In this document: in pieces, positions 19,375 through 28,561 of the stretch
Numbering within the stretch: the first letter of the stretch is position 1
Layout of the letters: each line of letters opens with the position of its first letter
Assembly (NCBI RefSeq): GCF_052425735.1
Contig: NC_135760.1
Span: 4,030,001-4,094,000, forward strand
DNA: 64,000 nucleotides
DNA from: Oculina patagonica
Lineage: Eukaryota
Direction: 5' to 3'
Position numbers and translations under genes: made by a program
Notes under the pieces: generated by a model
Database searches by the model: none
Told to the model about the DNA's origin: nothing
The model's input: the letters and a program-made list of their open reading frames with translations, nothing else

Positions 19375-20026
19375 CTCTATGGTTATTTTTTCAATACATG
19401 TTATGCATGTCAATTAGTTATGAATACTCAAGATGCAACATTTACAGTAAAGGATCAATATATTTTCACGAGCATGCATAGATGAGCCGAATTTATTTTG
19501 TAGACTCCTAACTGAAAAGTCTCTCTTGCTCGCCCCAGATCCTTTTCGAAAAATACGCTAAAAAAGGACCGCTTTGCAGTCTTGTAATTGGCCTTACAAA
19601 GAAGGATTTTATACTGCCGTGTTGTTAATACGTACTTTTAACCAATGAATACATATAGGATTTTTAATTGCAAGAATTAAAAATTAAAAATAGAAAAAGA
19701 ATAGGTTGATACAGTACAAAATTAATTCTCGAAGCTTTGTACGTACCCGGCGCTTTAATAATTCTTCCTTTGCCTCGCCATTTCACTCGCGATTTGGAAG
19801 TTTAGTCTCATAAAGTCTTGTCTGAACCTATCTTCAATAGCTTCTCTTGCATTTCTAGCCATGGTAAACACTTACAGTCTGTAATTCAGCGGGATATTAA
19901 TACCTGTCTTGCTCCAAAGGTTATTGAAATGTTCAACCCCGCCGGAAAAGAATGATTGTGGGCGCCAGGGATTAGGGATTGCACGTGACCGTGCGAGAAA
20001 AGGGCGTCATGCAGGGTATGATGGGT

Positions 20027-21332
20027 CACAGGCGGCCCAAGCTCTCTATCAGATTACCTTTGGACGTGACTCTTGCTTACGAGCGGTGTTGTGTTACAAA
20101 GATTCGAATTATAAGGGTTTGTATGGGAAACAACGGTTTTGCTTTAAAAGTAAAAAAAAATGTATATTTTGTGAATAAAGTTGACTTACCCTGATTCGTT
20201 GTTTCATTCTTTGTTGTCTGCCAGCTTTTCAGGTCGATCCAACGCGTTTTCGGCGAGTTATCGTTATTTAGGTGTTCCACTGCTAAAATAAAGACAAGGC
20301 TGTACACTGATTTCCGGAGTGCCCGCCGCTCGAAGCGAATAAATCCTCTGAAATTAGTCCTGTCGACCCATATTCCTCCGCAGAATCAAAGAAGAGATGT
20401 TGAAGTTCCATGTCTGTTCACTTGATTCGCAATTCTGCGCTCAAACGCCTTCGCTACGAAAGCTTTTTTCCGAGATTGCTTCGCTTCACAAATTCGAAAT
20501 AGCCGCGTCCAAACTGGCGTGGACGTTCTCGCGGCTCGCATAGCATGTTGGGTGACTATAATTAACCCGACGGGGGTGGACAGCATCGATTTGTCGACAG
20601 CCAATCCAGAATGCACCCAGGGTCCCCACGTGCTTTATTTGTCAACCCACGGCGAGGCGCTTTGTTTTCGTCGACCAATCAAAATCGCGCCGAGTCGTGT
20701 TTACAAAATTAAAAAAATAACGGCATAGAAAACGTATTTTCACCTGAGGAATCTATCGATCAGTGCGAAAAAGCGATCCATTCCGAAGCGATGACTTCTT
20801 CATCGTGGCACTGGAAGACATGGTAGGTTAAACTGTTTTCTTAACGCAAAAATTTATCCACAAAGCTGACGCTTACGGCTTTTGATCACATAGAAAAGTG
20901 AAATCTAATTATGAACATCGGTCACGTATCTTGTAGGTTGTTATCAAACTTCGAGCACTGCGAAGGAAAATTGTTAGCAGTTAGAGAGTTACTTGCCGAC
21001 GGAGAGAAGTTGAAAGAGAACGTTCCCTGTAAGGCAAGTTCGTCTTTGTTCGGCCTTTTCATAAAGCAGATTTGGGGCGAAAAAGTAAAGCTGGTAAAAC
21101 GCGGTTCGTCGAAGCAAGGACGACAAAATTTCTACCTTGGACTCGCAAGGAAATCCCCAACAACGACAGAAGAAAATCAACCCATCGCCGAGACACCGTT
21201 AAAACCCGGATGGCATTTGCTGAATGATCAAGGAGGACATTTATCGTTCGTAAGATATGAGCCCTGGTCATTCCGCAAACAGAGAGTTGTAACAGAGGTA
21301 AGGGTGGCAGACTCTGTCTCTCTGACATCACA
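20027..21332 (+). repeat. Left TIR (1306 bp) of the P-like element
   Basis: Reverse complement of 26684-27988; I noticed only 3 substitutions and one 1-bp indel by eye. Confidence 0.95.
20530..20700 (+). promoter_or_regulatory. Putative transposase promoter inside the TIR (mirrored at ~27315-27485)
   Basis: CpG-rich; ZNF143/SBS-like GCATGTTGGGTGA, two CCAAT boxes (AGCCAATC, GACCAATC) and E-box CACGTG just upstream of ATG 20791. Confidence 0.45.
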
Positions 21333-24300
21333 TGGATGCCAAATCGACCTGACAAACTTCTTTAAACAAGAGTGTTTGGAGAAATTGCCAACAAGTAAGC
21401 GGATTGAAATTATTTTAACTTTCGTTGATACTTCTAATTTGTGCCTTGGGGTTCCCATCAAAGAAGGAGAAGTGTCAAGTACAATAATCCCCCATGAAAG
21501 TGGTGATTTGGCAACAACTGAAGCTACAGAACGCAGGGCTTTTTCTTCAAACTGCTCAGTACTTGCTAGTGCTGGGCAGTGTTGCTCCAACTGCAAGAAC
21601 CTGCAGCACTTGGAAAAAAAAAGAGAGAAAAGAAAACTCGCAAGCAATGGTCCCAGTCCCTTCACCAACAAGCGCTACCTTTCAAAGGACGAAGTTGCAA
21701 AGCAACTGAAAATAGAAAGGCAAGCAAGGATTAACGCAGAGCGAAGAGAAACGTACTGGAGGGAAAAGTTTGAGGCACAATGTATCGAAATGGAGAAAGA
21801 TGACCACACAGATCTGTGCAAGATGTTTGAAGATGTTGGTGATCACGTGCCTGAAAGTATGACCAGCCTATGGGAACAGCAACAGAATCTACTGAAATGC
21901 AAAAGTAAAAATGCATACCGATGGCATCCAAAGTATGTAACATTTCTCGCATGTTCTTAAAATCTCAATAGGTCACAATATAGCAATCATCATGCTAGTT
22001 TTTAATAACATAGAATATTTCATTGCTAGTCATGCAAGCCTCTCAATATCAACACCCCCTCCCATCCCTTCTCTTCCTCAACACACAAGCACTTTATTGA
22101 ACCCCTTGTCATATATCTGTCAATATTTAATGATTTACGTCCATGTTGTATTTATTTACAGGATCATGAGATTATGCCTGGATCTTTACTGCAAAAACCC
22201 CTATGTGCTTGATCCACTACGTCAATTCATTATTCTACCAAGCAATAAGACAATAAGGTGAGGAACACTAAATTATACACATGGAAATGCATATTACACA
22301 TTTTTAATATCAAAAATAAAGTGACTACTATACATGCTCATGATCATCCAGAAGTACCTTGTTGTGCATGCAAATACTTCATGCTGCTTAGTAACTTCAG
22401 GAATTAACATCATAAAAGTAATCCGAAATATTAATGTTGTGGTTTTTGCATGAACTGTAACAATTAATTCCCAAACTTTAATTATCCCTTACAGTGAAAT
22501 GTTTATAAAACTAAACCTAAACTTCTAACTTCTACACTATTCTTTAATTACAGAATGTATAAGAACAAGGTTAAAGAGACTCCGGGGTGGAATGAAGAGG
22601 TACTCATGTGGTGCTTGAATGCTGCCAAAGAAAATGGCTTGAAGCCAGGAGATTTCATGGGTGGTTTTGCAATTGATGAGATGAAGATCCAGGTAAATAT
22701 GTTACAGTCTTGTAATGTACAACATTAGATAAAAAGTGATAAAAGTTAAAAATTTTTTTTATCCCTTTCAATTTTTTATCCATAGGAGAACCTAGGGATG
22801 ACATCTGAAAATGGGAAGCATAAGCTTGTGGGCTTTGTTGACCTTGGGATAGGTCATGATATCATGAGAACTTTGTCAGGTACATACTAGTGTTGTTTCA
22901 TACAACCTCTTTACTCCCCTTTATAAAAGGAATAGAAATTACTTAGGTTGGGGGTTCTCCAGACCAAAAATTTGAAATAAAAGTATACAGTTTAACTGGA
23001 ATTTTCAGAGGAGTAGGGATTCTTATTGAAAATTCCTTCTGTGGGGGAGGTTTGGAAATTGTGTTATTCCAGAAAATATCCATATCCCTCCCACGGAAGG
23101 TTTTTTGGTTTTAATACCCCACCCCTCTGGAAATTCCAGATAAGCTCCATACTTCCCTTTAAAAATTTAAGCTTTCAAGACCCCTCACCACCTCAGAATT
23201 TCCAATGACCTTCCATGAGGTGGGTATGGATATTTTCTGAAACTGCACATTTGATGGAACTACACATTTACAAAATTCAATATTTAAACAATTTTCATTT
23301 TCCTGTCATTTTCAAAACTTGACATGTGTATAAAATTAAAATCTACCTGACTTTGAACTAAGTATTTTGCCCGTACATTATATTATTTTCAATAAAGTAT
23401 TGTCAGTACTTTTATTCTTTAACATATCATTTGTAGGTGAGGACAGTGAACCAGAACTTGCAACACATGTGCTACAATTTGTTTTCCTGAGTGATGGTGG
23501 CTTCAGGTTTCCGATTGCGCAATGGCCATCGGCAAACTGCACTCCCAGCGATCTATACCATCTGTTCTGGGAGGGAGTCCTGAAGATGTTAGAAATAGGA
23601 TTTGAGTAAGTGGATATTAAGTTAGGTATTCAGTTATGACTCTATACAATTCAAAAAGTATCATTATAGGGTAAAAAATGTGCATACAAAGCTAAACTAC
23701 ATAAAGAATTTGCTGGGTACAGTGCTGCTGCAGTGCCCCCACTCCTTTATAGTCTATTTCTAGCCCTTTTTTTTTTGGGGGGGGGGGGGGTTGTCACTCA
23801 TATAGCTTGAGTTGACAAATATTTAGTGCCTGCTTACGATAAAAAAGACTGGGTGTTTAAAAGCTCAACTGGTTAGAACAGTCTACATAAAGGGTTTAAA
23901 AATTAAAGATGAATCAATGTTAATTGTGAGTCTTTATTTCTTACGATAAAAAAGACTGGGTGTTTAAAAGCTCAACTGGTTAGAACAGTCTACATAAAGG
24001 GTTTAAAAATTAAAGATGAATCAATGTTAATTGTGAGTCTTTATTTCTAACTTAGGATATACTGGTGTGTGCTTGATGGGGCAGACTGCAACAGGCAGTT
24101 CATTAAAATTCATTTTAAGGGCAAGGACCCTGCTGATAGCAAGTTTATGACCACCAATATATACACCGGATGCCCGATGATATTTATCATGGACCCAAAG
24201 GTAGTCTATCATTAAAATTGAGTCTTGTTATTGTATCAGCCCAATCTTAAAGTGCTCATTGTAGAACACTAGGACACTTATTCATTCGTCTGTTCATTTG

Positions 24301-24914
24301 TTTTTTCGTTCATTTTTGAATCCATCCATCCATCCATTCACTTAATCTTTTGGGTATTCTATCAGCCCATGGCCAGCAGTCAGTCTGCTTGTAGTTATTT
24401 ATTTATTCATCCATTCATTCATTCTTCGTTGTTTCATCCATTCATACACCAATGCATTAATAAATTTTTTTGGTCAGGGAGGGGTGGAAAAGGGGATAAT
24501 TTAGGCTGAAAAAGATCATGTACACCGCTTTATAAAATCAAAATTTTTCTTATGTTTACCCCTTACAATACTGTCAAGTCTTCAATCAATAAACAATCTC
24601 AGTTATTAATATTAAAACAGCTTAAGTCTTTTTTGCAGTAACACCTTTTATATATTCAACAGCATAACATTAAGAAAATCTGGAATAACATCTACAAGAG
24701 CAACAAGACTGGAAACCCAAGATGCCTCAAAATCGGAGAAAAGCCAATCACCTGGAAGCAGTTTAGAAGTGCCTTTGACTGGGACCAGCAGAGCTTCTCG
24801 CTCCCACTGCACGAGAAATTAACCCAGCAGCATTTAAACCTTGATTCAGCAAGCATCATGAGAAACAAGCTTGCAGAAGATGTATTAGATGCCAAGATGT
24901 TATTTTTAATGCAG
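20791..24914 (+). CDS. P-element-type transposase, C-terminally truncated (641 codons over 8 exons: 20791-20822, 20937-21932, 22162-22257, 22554-22692, 22786-22879, 23437-23605, 24056-24200, 24663-24914), with an N-terminal RFX-like winged helix
   Basis: All junctions GT-AG and in phase. Motifs YRWHPKIMRLCLDL..LPSNKTIR, IDEMKIQ (first catalytic D), VGFVDLG, ATHVLQF, LDGADCNR (second D), MDPKHNIKKIWNN (D-x2-H), KLTQQH..MRNKLA. No exon with the catalytic E found downstream. Confidence 0.85.
23834..24047 (+). repeat. Exact tandem duplication, 2 x 107 bp, in transposase intron 6
   Basis: TTACGATAAAAAAGACTGGG...GTCTTTATTTC occurs at 23834-23940 and 23941-24047. Confidence 0.9.
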
Positions 24915-25689
24915 GTATTTATTTTATGCCTTGCACGCTTCATCAAATTCCATTAAGAATTATAATGTTTCTAACGACAGAGTTTTCTACTGTTAATTAT
25001 TTCTGTCAAGAATGCTGTGTTTTCTGCTCCCAAGGTTACAGTACAAAATAATACAAGATACAGTATTTTAAAACCTTTTTAGCACACAAAAAGAGAGTGA
25101 AAAGAAATGATAGCTGAGCACTGCCTGTTGATATTTCAAGATGGCATTTTCTTCATTTTTATTATTGTATTAAATTGTAAATTGTAATCATGTCATTGAT
25201 ATTTTTGAGATTGTGGTTTGAGAATCTTCATGTATATATTATTCATGTATATATTTACCACTTTGAAACAAGATCCACTCTATCTTTGGAGCAATGTAAA
25301 AGATAATTCAGGCCAGAATAGTTTTAATGACATGTAGATGTTTTGGGTTTTAGTACATGCCCATTTACAATACAGCATATCATCACAAAAGTTAGAAAAA
25401 TGTAATGTGTGTTGTATTTAAGCTTATGCTTGTGTAGTTTATCACCAATGTACAAGTAGTGTACATGTTTGTGTATATTTTGTATATATACAATAAGAGA
25501 TCTGATGGAATTTTTTTCATGTAAATAATTATTGTTTAAATAATTTCTCGATTTTTAGGCTTAAGTTTTATATCAAGGAATCAATATAAGTCAAAATTAT
25601 AAAGAGCTTAGATCAATCGCAAAATATATAAAAAAATATAATTAAATTTTTGGAACAACAAATTAGAATAATGATAATAAAAGAAATAC

Positions 25690-26683
25690 CTGGAATGGGA
25701 CACTATCACTTTTCTCTTTTTTCTTTTCTTGCCTTTGCAAGACTCGTTTCCGTAGTTCCACACTCTTTTTCACTTGGCATTCTCTGCGAAAATCTCTCAA
25801 GAACTGACACGCTCCCATGTTCACATAGTAAAGCAATATGTCTGACAGAAGCTTCTCAATGAGTTCCTGAGGAGAACAAAAAGAATTACCGATATAAATG
25901 ATGATTGTTTTACATTGAGATTTAAATTGTTTATACTCACAATTTTGAAGATTTATGTTCTGGATCGGCAAAACAAGTGAGAGTCGCCATCTTAATTTAC
26001 AAGTACATTGTAGTTCCCAGTCTTTATCCTCCATACATTAATGGGCGTCTACCGTACATGTGCTTGTCTCTTTCTTCATTATTTTATTTTAATATATTAT
26101 ATCCAGGCAAACAGAATTTTTATTGTAACTTAAAAATGATTAAGAAAGCGATTTCTTACCTTGTGCTTACAGATATCCTCATTTTCAAAGCACTGTAGCC
26201 AACTCGTCTTCAATTCTTGATCAGCTTTTAACTCAACTAACGCCATTTCAACCATTTCTTCCCGCGCTTTTTTCAAAATGTGCAAATTGAGTAATTCCAC
26301 TCGCCTTTTCTCTAGTTCCATAAAGAAAATGTACGCCTGGTCTGAAATGTGAAGCAATCCTCTTTCGCGGTATTGTCTCCCTTCTGTCACTTCTAGCGTT
26401 TCCGGGAACATTGAAGTTTCCTCCAGTTCCGAATAGGGTCGGATGACGTTCTCTTCAAGCAAATGACAGGCTATCTGTTGGTTCTCAACTCTGGCCAGCG
26501 TGGAACTGCACTTGGTGAACAGATTCTTTTGAATGTATTTTCTGCAGCGATTTAGAACCTTCCTCACAGCCCAACCCCCAACATGTCGTACTTTTGATCG
26601 ACCTACTCCGCTCATTTCATCAACATCAAAACGGACGGCCTCCTCCTGCCTTTGCTGATTCACGACAGAAACTAGCCCTGATG
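25690..26683 (-). CDS. Second (convergent) gene of the P-like element, partial; exons ~26683-26160 and 25866-25690
   Basis: Open frame runs from the inner TIR border (..TSGLVSVVNQQRQEEAVRF..KVRHVGGWAVRKVL..RGLLHISDQAYIFFMELE..CKHK), donor AAG|GTAAGA, acceptor CTCCTCAG, in-phase exon ELIEKLLSDILLYYVNMGACQFLRDFRR..PFQ|GT. Confidence 0.7.
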
Positions 26684-27225
26684 TGTGATGTCAGAGAGAC
26701 AGAGTCTGCCACCCTTACCTCTGTTACAACTCTCTGTTTGCGGAATGACCAGGGCTCATATCTTACGAACGATAAATGTCCTCCTTGATCATTCAGCAAA
26801 TGCCATCCAGGTTTTAACGGTGTCTCGGCGATGGGTTGATTTTCTTCTGTCGTTGTTGGGGATTTCCTTGCGAGTCCAAGGTAGAAATTTTGTCGTCCTT
26901 GCTTCGACGAACCGCGTTTTACCAGCTTTACTTTTTCGCCCCAAATCTGCTTTATGAAAAGGCCGAACAAAGACGAACTTGCCTTACAGGGAACGTTCTC
27001 TTTCAACTTCTCTCCGTCGGCAAGTAACTCTCTAACTGCTAACAATTTTCCTTCGCAGTGCTCGAAGTTTGATAACAACCTACAAGATACGTGACCGATG
27101 TTCATAATTAGATTTCACTTTTCTATGTGATCAAAAGCCGTAAGCGTCAGCTTTGTGGATAAATTTTTGCGTTAAAAAAACAGTTTAACCTACCATGTCT
27201 TCCAGTGCCACGATGAAGAAGTCAT
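26626..27225 (-). CDS. TIR-duplicated 5' end of the transposase: ~161-aa product with the RFX-like domain only (exons 27225-27194, 27079-26626)
   Basis: Mirror copy of transposase exons 1-2; reads past the TIR border into IRASFCRESAKAGGGRPF-stop. Confidence 0.55.
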
Positions 27226-27988
27226 CGCTTCGGAATGGATCGCTTTTTCGCACTGATCGATAGATTCCTCAGGTGAAAATACGTTTTCTATGCCGTTATT
27301 TTTTTAATTTTGTAAACACGACTCGGCGCGATTTTGATTGGTCGACGAAAACAAAGCGCCTCGCCGTGGGTTGACAAATAAAGCACGTGGGGACCCTGGG
27401 TGCATTCTGGATTGGCTGTCGACAAATCGATGCTGTCCACCCCCGTCGGGTTAATTATAGTCACCCAACATGCTATGCGAGCCGCGAGAACGTCCACGCC
27501 AGTTTGGACGCGGCTATTTCGAATTTGTGAAGCGAAGCAATCTCGGAAAAAAGCTTTCGTAGCGAAGGCGTTTGAGCGCAGAATTGCGAATCAAGTGAAC
27601 AGACATGGAACTTCAACATCTCTTCTTTGATTCTGCGGAGGAATATGGGTCGACAGGACTAATTTCAGAGGATTTATTCGCTTCGAGCGGCGGGCACTCC
27701 GGAAATCAGTGTACAGCCTTGTCTTTATTTTAGCAGTGGAACACCTAAATAACGATAACTCGCCGAAAACGCGTTGGATCGACCTGAAAAGCTGGCAGAC
27801 AACAAAGAATGAAACAACGAATCAGGTAAATCAACTTTATTCACAAAATATACATTTTTTTTTACTTTTAAAGCAAAACCGTTGTTTCCCATACAAACCC
27901 TTATAATTCGAATCTTTGTAACACAACACCGCTCGTAAGCAAGAGTCACGTCCAAAGGTAATCTGATAGAGAGCTTGGGCCGCCTGTG
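26684..27988 (-). repeat. Right TIR (1305 bp) of the P-like element
   Basis: Reverse complement of 20027-21332. Confidence 0.95.
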
Positions 27989-28014
27989 GATGGGTATGCA
28001 TCTTTTGATGTTTC

Positions 28015-28561
28015 CACAGGGAGCCCGAACGCTGTATTGGCAAAGTTAATAATGAAAATAAAGATATGTTTGTTACCTGTGCTCCTGTGTCTTTCTTTGT
28101 CCTTAAAATGGTTGTGCTCTTGTGTCTTTCTTTGTCCTTAAAATGGTATTTGAATCGGTGCGAAAACGGTTTGAGCAAGCCTTGTCTGACGCTCCGTAAA
28201 TAACGACGCAGTTAACACGTCTCGTATTTCCATTCATGTTATTAACTATTAATTCTCAACGGGAGAGCGTTAAATTGAAATACGAGATTATCTCCCCAGG
28301 AGTGTTAATGGTTAATATGGAAAGAAATAGTTAATAACATGAATGGAAATACGAGACGTGTTAACTGCGTCGTTATTTACGGAGCGTCAGACAAGGCTTG
28401 CTCAAACCGTTTTCGCACCGATTCAAATACCATTTTAAGGACAAAGAAAGACACAAGAGCACAACCATTTTAAGGACAAAGAAAGACACAGGAGCACAGG
28501 TAACAAACATATCTTTATTTTCATTATTAACTTTGCCAATACAGCGTTAGGGCTCCCTGTG
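28015..28561. mobile_element. Foldback MITE related to the P-like element (236-bp arms, 75-bp spacer, 7-bp TSD)
   Basis: Ends CACAGGGAGCCC...GGGCTCCCTGTG; TSD ATGTTTC at 28008-28014 and 28562-28568; arms 28015-28250 and 28326-28561 with one mismatch seen; ~35-bp tandem repeat in each arm. Confidence 0.9.

Follow-up and report, generated by a model that had tools for sequence, protein, structure and literature searches.

Few eukaryotic transposases have been studied as thoroughly as that of the P element, which is regarded as one polypeptide. Its C-terminal domain (CTD) is helical in the P-element strand-transfer complex and attached by a disordered linker. In the Drosophila protein, this domain corresponds to about residues 617–715 of PDB 6P5A, and Pfam family PF12596 covers its start. 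Galileo and 1360, members of the P superfamily, have long terminal inverted repeats (TIRs) and 7-bp target duplications. PIF/Harbinger elements are cut-and-paste transposons that use a transposase and a Myb-like DNA-binding protein. Helitrons encode the RepHel protein, which includes a PIF1-family helicase. Internally deleted P elements encode repressors (PMC7776569).

The element described here is found in the genome of Oculina patagonica and lies within a 64,000-nt window, the whole stretch of DNA that was analyzed (contig NC_135760.1, forward-strand positions 4,030,001–4,094,000). Unprefixed coordinates are window positions. The original prediction singled out positions 25690–26683 as a convergent second gene resembling a detached P-transposase CTD. 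Taken as one joint reading, this stretch is likely the 3′ remnant of a PIF1-type helicase gene, the second gene of a two-gene P-superfamily transposon, with the last subdomain of its tail being a relative of the P-transposase CTD that is supplied in trans. The features of the locus are:

20027..27988, no strand, entire element copy of 7.96 kb, derived by deletion from a two-gene P-type transposon of ~14.5 kb
20027..21332, plus strand, left arm, normal TIR only in its outer 684 bp (20027-20710)
24675..24920, plus strand, transposase exon resembling the TNP-like GTP-binding insertion domain
25090, no strand, deletion breakpoint at which 1.43 kb of the full copy (C9:806404-807833) is absent
25690..25866, minus strand, exon B of the PIF1-CTD gene, 59 codons, with a basic helix and the third shared motif (Y..M....FLRDFRR..)
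25867..26159, minus strand, GT-AG intron of 293 nt, removed in a contig of sequencing run X1
26160..26679, minus strand, large-exon remnant with a P-CTD-like core, the last ~173 codons of an 826-codon ORF
26680..26683, no strand, junction filler of ~4 nt separating the gene remnant from the inverted duplicate
26684..27988, minus strand, right arm, inverted duplicate of 20027-21332

The large-exon remnant lies in a minus-strand frame of 168 codons (26663..26160) that holds HVGGWAVRKVL and RGLLHISDQAYIFFMELE. Its core motifs are RHVGGWAVRK and RGLLHISD..Y.FF..LE. The frame closes in phase 0 at a GT donor (26159-26158), the AG acceptor is at 25868-25867, and exon B is bounded by another GT (25689). 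The two-exon frame has 227 codons in total. Splicing of the intron is shown by a contig of run X1, whose identity as RNA is only a guess: in it, 26159 is followed directly by 25865, and the intervening 293 nt, with minus-strand GT..AG, are missing. P0058, an annotated paralogue, is uninterrupted across the intron position. The motifs and the basic helical tail expected on the minus strand were found in frames 26663..26160 and 25866..25690, and the expected intron of their own was borne out by the splice sites, the X1 contig, and P0058. The segment had also been placed opposite the catalytic exons, which agrees with its plus-strand neighbor being P-type, with a GTP-binding-domain exon at 24675-24920. 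Except for an internal Met, the remnant frame is without a start codon, and its upper limit at 26683 is a rearrangement junction and no gene start.

Both termini of the window copy are CACAGGCGGCCC, as are those of the single second copy of the stretch in the genome (G000:C9:798246-812775, referred to as the C9 copy), which is 99% identical and in the opposite orientation. Exact 7-bp target-site duplications flank the window copy (GATGGGT at 20020-20026 and 27989-27995) and the C9 copy (ATAAAAT). The C9 copy has TIRs of 684 bp, and its sequence matching window position 26679 runs on for another 5.9 kb. In the window copy, the right arm stands where the normal right end and these 5.9 kb, including the helicase-coding part, would be; the right 6.6 kb are lost and an inverted copy of the left 1.3 kb is present instead. 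Right and left arms are 100% identical over 1,143 nt and 99% identical over 164 nt. Inward of the TIR, the left arm takes in the 5′ region of the transposase and codons 1 to ~141 of a 349-codon plus-strand ORF (20911-21960), and the right-arm duplicate breaks this ORF after ~141 codons. Unlike the long TIRs of Galileo and 1360, the 1.3-kb arms of the window copy come from a secondary duplication, the TIRs of its sister copy being 684 bp. Within the 1.43 kb deleted at 25090 lie the RNaseH_C exon of the transposase and the final PIF1-CTD exon. In the window copy, both genes thus lack their 3′ ends, and the entire helicase is gone.

Because it has its own flanks with an exact 7-bp target duplication, the window copy is a real insertion, with later internal deletion and right-end replacement. 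It is best regarded as a dead derivative that is no longer autonomous. The deletion may have arisen by faulty gap repair with template switching between identical inverted ends; the extended inverted arm and the ~4 nt of filler fit repair synthesis switching between inverted ends. Like KP-type P elements, the copy has intact ends and a deleted interior, as happens when gap repair is interrupted. It differs in that one of its ends is in an inverted duplicate, and no evidence of repressor activity was found for it. A perfect tandem duplication with a 107-nt unit lies within a transposase intron (23833-24046), and the repeat count differs in the C9 copy. A perfect 236-nt palindrome with a 75-nt loop is located 26 bp beyond the right end of the element (28015-28561).

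The parent gene is intact in the C9 copy. There, the first exon of the remnant makes up the final 177 codons of a continuous frame of 826 codons, which is followed by two small exons. Residues 19–428 of this ORF are a PIF1 helicase (PF05970, 80 bits; cut-off, 25.9), and P0058 matches the same family at 91 bits. The ORF begins ~30 aa before Walker A. The helicase core, with Walker A/B and the PIF1 2B domain, is present in the parent gene and deleted from the window fragment. Residues 429–826 are a helical extension of ~400 aa without a Pfam family, here called the CTD. The third exon, at C9:806474-806779, matches P0058 residues 901–1000 and falls within the 1.43 kb deleted from the window copy. 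In the NCBI model of P0058, the first 51 codons lie outside the TIR, and the exon they form may be mis-annotated. Rather than a stand-alone gene of ~230 aa, the segment is the tail of a PIF1-like helicase protein of ~1000 aa and in the window a truncated remnant that lacks a start.

A PIF1-family helicase encoded by a transposon is shared with Helitron RepHel. However, the coral element lacks a Rep nuclease, is bounded by TIRs with target duplications, and carries its helicase beside a DDE-type P transposase. The C9 helicase is also nearer to cellular PIF1 (human PIF1, 6hph; E 7.5e-26) than to Helraiser (E 0.0019). No Rep domain was detected in the C9 helicase ORF; on this ground and because TIRs and target duplications are present, a Helitron fragment was rejected.

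A 160-position core profile built from 10 sequences matched 878 cluster representatives at E≤1e-3. No P transposase was found among the 150 matches listed, all of which are family members. By sequence comparison, conservation of the CTD is far above chance. By word search, the CTD family includes about 60 proteins of 800–1000 aa with an N-terminal PIF1 domain, and CTD-bearing PIF1 proteins occur in scleractinians, an octocoral, an anemone, and two hemichordates. No Pfam domain besides PIF1 was found in ten CTD members of odd length. The hemichordates Ptychodera flava and Glandiceps talaboti have PIF1-CTD proteins and CTD-only models (P0227, P0272, P0233, P0240). One PIF1-CTD member is filed under a gammaproteobacterial metagenome-assembled genome and is probably on a mis-binned animal contig.

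The helicase gene is paired with a P-type transposase at every locus examined in the genome. The GTP-binding-domain exon at 24675-24920 resembles canonical P ORFs found in this genome. An X1 contig passes from position 24914 of this exon to the RNaseH_C exon, present in the full copy alone. In the C9 copy, RNaseH_C (PF21789) scores 31 bits and the ORF stops 41 aa later. Pfam did not detect RNaseH_N in the short exons of the element. Nine diverged lineages in the genome (24–67% amino acid identity) have the transposase and the PIF1-CTD gene convergent within long TIRs. Downstream of all eight diverged CTD paralogues whose flanks were inspected (25–49% identity to C9), convergent transposase exons are present, and the CTD segment is on the strand opposite the transposase in 10 of the 10 copies examined. 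Each of five paralogue loci checked for inverted repeats has TIRs of 140–980 bp with CACAGG..GCCC termini that enclose both genes. Exact 7-bp duplications flank four copies (window, C9, C7a, and C7b). Pairwise identities of the two genes co-vary over the nine lineages (r=0.78; 34 non-independent pairs). Run X1, again RNA by guess, has spliced contigs of both genes in the full-copy form. As the pairing within TIRs is kept in diverged lineages, this is a two-gene transposon lineage and not a nested insertion. Its long TIRs (0.14–1 kb) and 7-bp target duplications are features shared with Galileo and 1360, whereas Galileo encodes a single THAP transposase.

The 684-bp TIR (20027-20710; C9:798246-798928) extends over sequence upstream of the transposase ATG (20911). 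Being repeated at the other end, this sequence is consequently also upstream of the PIF1-CTD gene, and one TIR-borne promoter might serve both convergent genes. Loci L011 and L012 (G000:C7:17052559-17053689 and G000:C7:17123162-17124292) are 100%-identical copies of another two-gene lineage, the one to which the model P0058 belongs. They are separated by 70 kb, a sign that transposition or segmental duplication was very recent.

Direct comparisons of the CTD with the P-transposase domain were negative for sequence profiles. Pfam searches with each exon separately gave nothing, with no match to PF12596 at E≤1, and 23 CTD family members gave no PF12596 match at E≤10. This was the profile check suggested for the fragment, and it came out against a direct match. 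A six-frame genome scan with PF12596 did not match the CTD loci. The CTD profile had no match among PDB sequences, Foldseek found nothing in the PDB with either structural model, and the ESM Atlas yielded no usable match for the CTD. When an AlphaFold model of the whole CTD (pLDDT 75) was compared with 48,161 chains, the best domain-sized match for its residues 236–398 was 6p5a_B 617-715, the P-transposase CTD (VIA-align; Z 6.8, below 8; rmsd 3.2; 99 residues aligned). A model of the window exon (pLDDT 88) matched 6p5a_B with Z 6.6, also below 8 (VIA-align; 92 residues aligned), and only two helix hairpins of 43–47 residues ranked above it. According to the tool's own note, Z values of 6.6–6.8 are within the range reachable by chance for helical domains. 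Both domains are all-helical, and each has a conserved helix with the pattern aromatic-GG-aromatic..(R/H)K as well as a basic helix at the C terminus. The coral domain differs in its location in a separate, convergent gene, where it is fused to a helicase, and in having no direct Pfam match, ~13% identity, and a longer spacer between motifs.

A second family links the two domains. THAP-headed P elements of the same genome have a convergent second ORF (ORF2) of 342 aa with a C2H2 finger, located 2.5–3 kb downstream of eight of the nine strong RNaseH_N loci. At L034 (L034:1936-8156; G000:C12:29385935-29392155), ORF2 lies inside 50-bp TIRs. This locus and also L036 and L035 are two-gene units in which a transposase (THAP, RNaseH_N, GTP-binding domain, and weak RNaseH_C) faces ORF2. 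ORF2 relatives are widespread in corals, including Stylophora, Montipora, Pocillopora, and Acropora. One ORF2 paralogue meets PF12596 at 24.8 bits, just above the cut-off of 22.6, and 18 of 40 family members match the family at the same place, over profile positions 58–104 only. An ORF2 HMM searched without filtering against 210 CTD proteins gave E values of 1.4e-6, 2.4e-5, 3.3e-5, 5.3e-5, 2e-4, and 8e-4, while the best E value in reversed and five shuffled control databases was 0.02. The ORF2 and CTD alignments are collinear over three motifs. YlGGYv.hK in ORF2 corresponds to RHVGGWAVRK in the CTD, RGGLWsit..a..iF..tE to RGLLHISD..Y.FF..LE, and lYvrvRsFs.akD to Y..M....FLRDFRR. Profile-profile comparison of CTD and ORF2 by hhalign was collinear and weak (P 0.026–0.17), and the observed score was reached by 1 of 60 shuffles. 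The CTD is homologous to this ORF2/PF12596 family. Through the chain of CTD to ORF2, ORF2 to PF12596, and the structural match to 6p5a, its homology to the P-transposase CTD is probable. The likeness to the P/THAP9 C-terminal domain that had been noted from the sequence was upheld by way of the ORF2 family (E 1.4e-6; 24.8 bits) and 6p5a, but not by a direct Pfam match.

In both P lineages, with PIF1-CTD and THAP-headed, the RNaseH_C ORFs stop ~40–46 aa after RNaseH_C. No CTD-like sequence was found on the transposase strand of six elements with the CTD and ORF2 family HMMs, and a further small transposase exon could conceivably carry a CTD of its own. Since an intact PIF1-CTD gene always faces a P-type transposase without a CTD, coral P elements look like two-protein systems. 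It is quite possible, and tentatively proposed here, that coral and probably hemichordate P-superfamily transposons are obligate two-protein machines, in which the CTD was lost from the catalytic subunit and is delivered by a partner, tethering a helicase in this way. The partner would be a C2H2 zinc-finger protein in the THAP-headed lineage or a PIF1 helicase in the long-TIR lineage. In the preferred reading of the window, the transposase ends shortly after its RNase H domain, apparently without a C-terminal domain, and the helicase protein would dock into the transpososome through its CTD. The partner would thereby supply in trans the DNA-contacting CTD that the Drosophila P transposase has in cis. 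By analogy with the arrangement in the Drosophila P transposase, such supply in trans is plausible. The other module of the partner (the zinc finger or, in the long-TIR lineage, the PIF1 helicase) would be anchored at the transpososome, and a 5′-3′ helicase might be brought to the transposon ends or the donor gap. From what is generally known of PIF1 helicases, it could open the ends for a staggered cut or promote repair synthesis that copies the element into the donor gap. The coral elements would share with PIF/Harbinger that two element proteins are or appear to be needed for cut-and-paste transposition. PIF/Harbinger belongs to another transposase superfamily, and its partner is a small DNA-binding protein and neither a piece of the transposase fold nor a helicase. 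The window copy is incapable of the proposed role, as it no longer has the helicase, the last exon of the helicase gene, the transposase RNaseH_C exon, or a right end of its own.

Other explanations concern the relationship between the two genes. The PIF1-CTD gene could be a passenger, either a captured host gene or a Helitron-like piece, with no role in transposition and a likeness to the P-transposase CTD by chance. The blank direct family scans of the CTD and the middling structural Z values would agree with this, as would a helicase nearer to cellular PIF1 than to the Helitron helicase, which is expected of a captured host gene. A passenger is nevertheless unlikely given that the pairing persists in nine lineages down to 24–31% identity with intact frames and co-varying divergence, and that in another P lineage this domain sits on a different partner, which occupies the equivalent convergent position. 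The cross-family HMM matches are far above controls, and the Rep domain is absent. The original prediction had offered two accounts of the opposite strand, a separately encoded subunit or an internal inversion that flipped the 3′ end of a formerly co-linear transposase gene. The window copy does contain an inverted duplication with its boundary exactly at 26683/26684, but what is inverted there is the element's 5′ end and not the remnant. In the full C9 copy and eight diverged lineages of this genome, which answers the suggestion to inspect full-length copies, the segment is oppositely encoded in the convergent gene, inside a helicase ORF. Its opposite strand in every intact relative and the stop of the transposase ~40 aa past RNaseH_C favor the separate subunit, in a helicase-fused rather than stand-alone form, and local inversion, being scarcely credible, was rejected.

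Two further explanations concern the window copy itself. The 25090 deletion and the 26683/26684 junction could be assembly errors and the copy no true derivative. The rearrangement is seen in the assembly alone: neither junction is bridged by a contig in runs X15, X19, and X1, the loose contig ends at both follow the C9 form, and the arms are identical at 100%. This is still distinctly unlikely for a copy with its own flanks, a perfect 7-bp duplication on each side, and its own substitutions relative to C9 (0.6–0.9%); moreover, contigs prove presence and not absence, and the other runs are perhaps from other individuals. A simple fold-back read artifact was rejected, as the arms are 5.3 kb apart and the target duplications match. 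If the structure is real, the remnant could remain in use. Transcription from the duplicated 5′ region in the right arm might yield a truncated DNA-binding head or a CTD-only peptide from the internal Met near 26618, with KP-type interference with transposition. The right arm does duplicate the transposase upstream region and the first 141 codons, aimed into the remnant, and repressors are known to be encoded by internally deleted P elements (PMC7776569). Such use is very unlikely, however, since the duplicated ORF meets a stop at 26626 in another frame, RNA contigs over the stretch carry full-copy sequence beyond 26679 and not the window junction, and only a single such copy exists in the genome.

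The preferred reading remains that of a two-gene P-superfamily transposon whose helicase gene left its 3′ remnant in the window. Neither a split P transposase nor a P-type element with a PIF1 helicase was found described in the full-text literature, a scope that excludes most subscription journals and Repbase. Natural elements that encode the DNA-contacting CTD in a second protein would demonstrate that it is able to act in trans. If the reading is true, a cut-and-paste DDE transposon recruits a PIF1-family helicase, until now a hallmark of Helitrons. The coral elements would then make questions about the P mechanism testable, including the role of the CTD and the handling of single-stranded ends and the donor gap.
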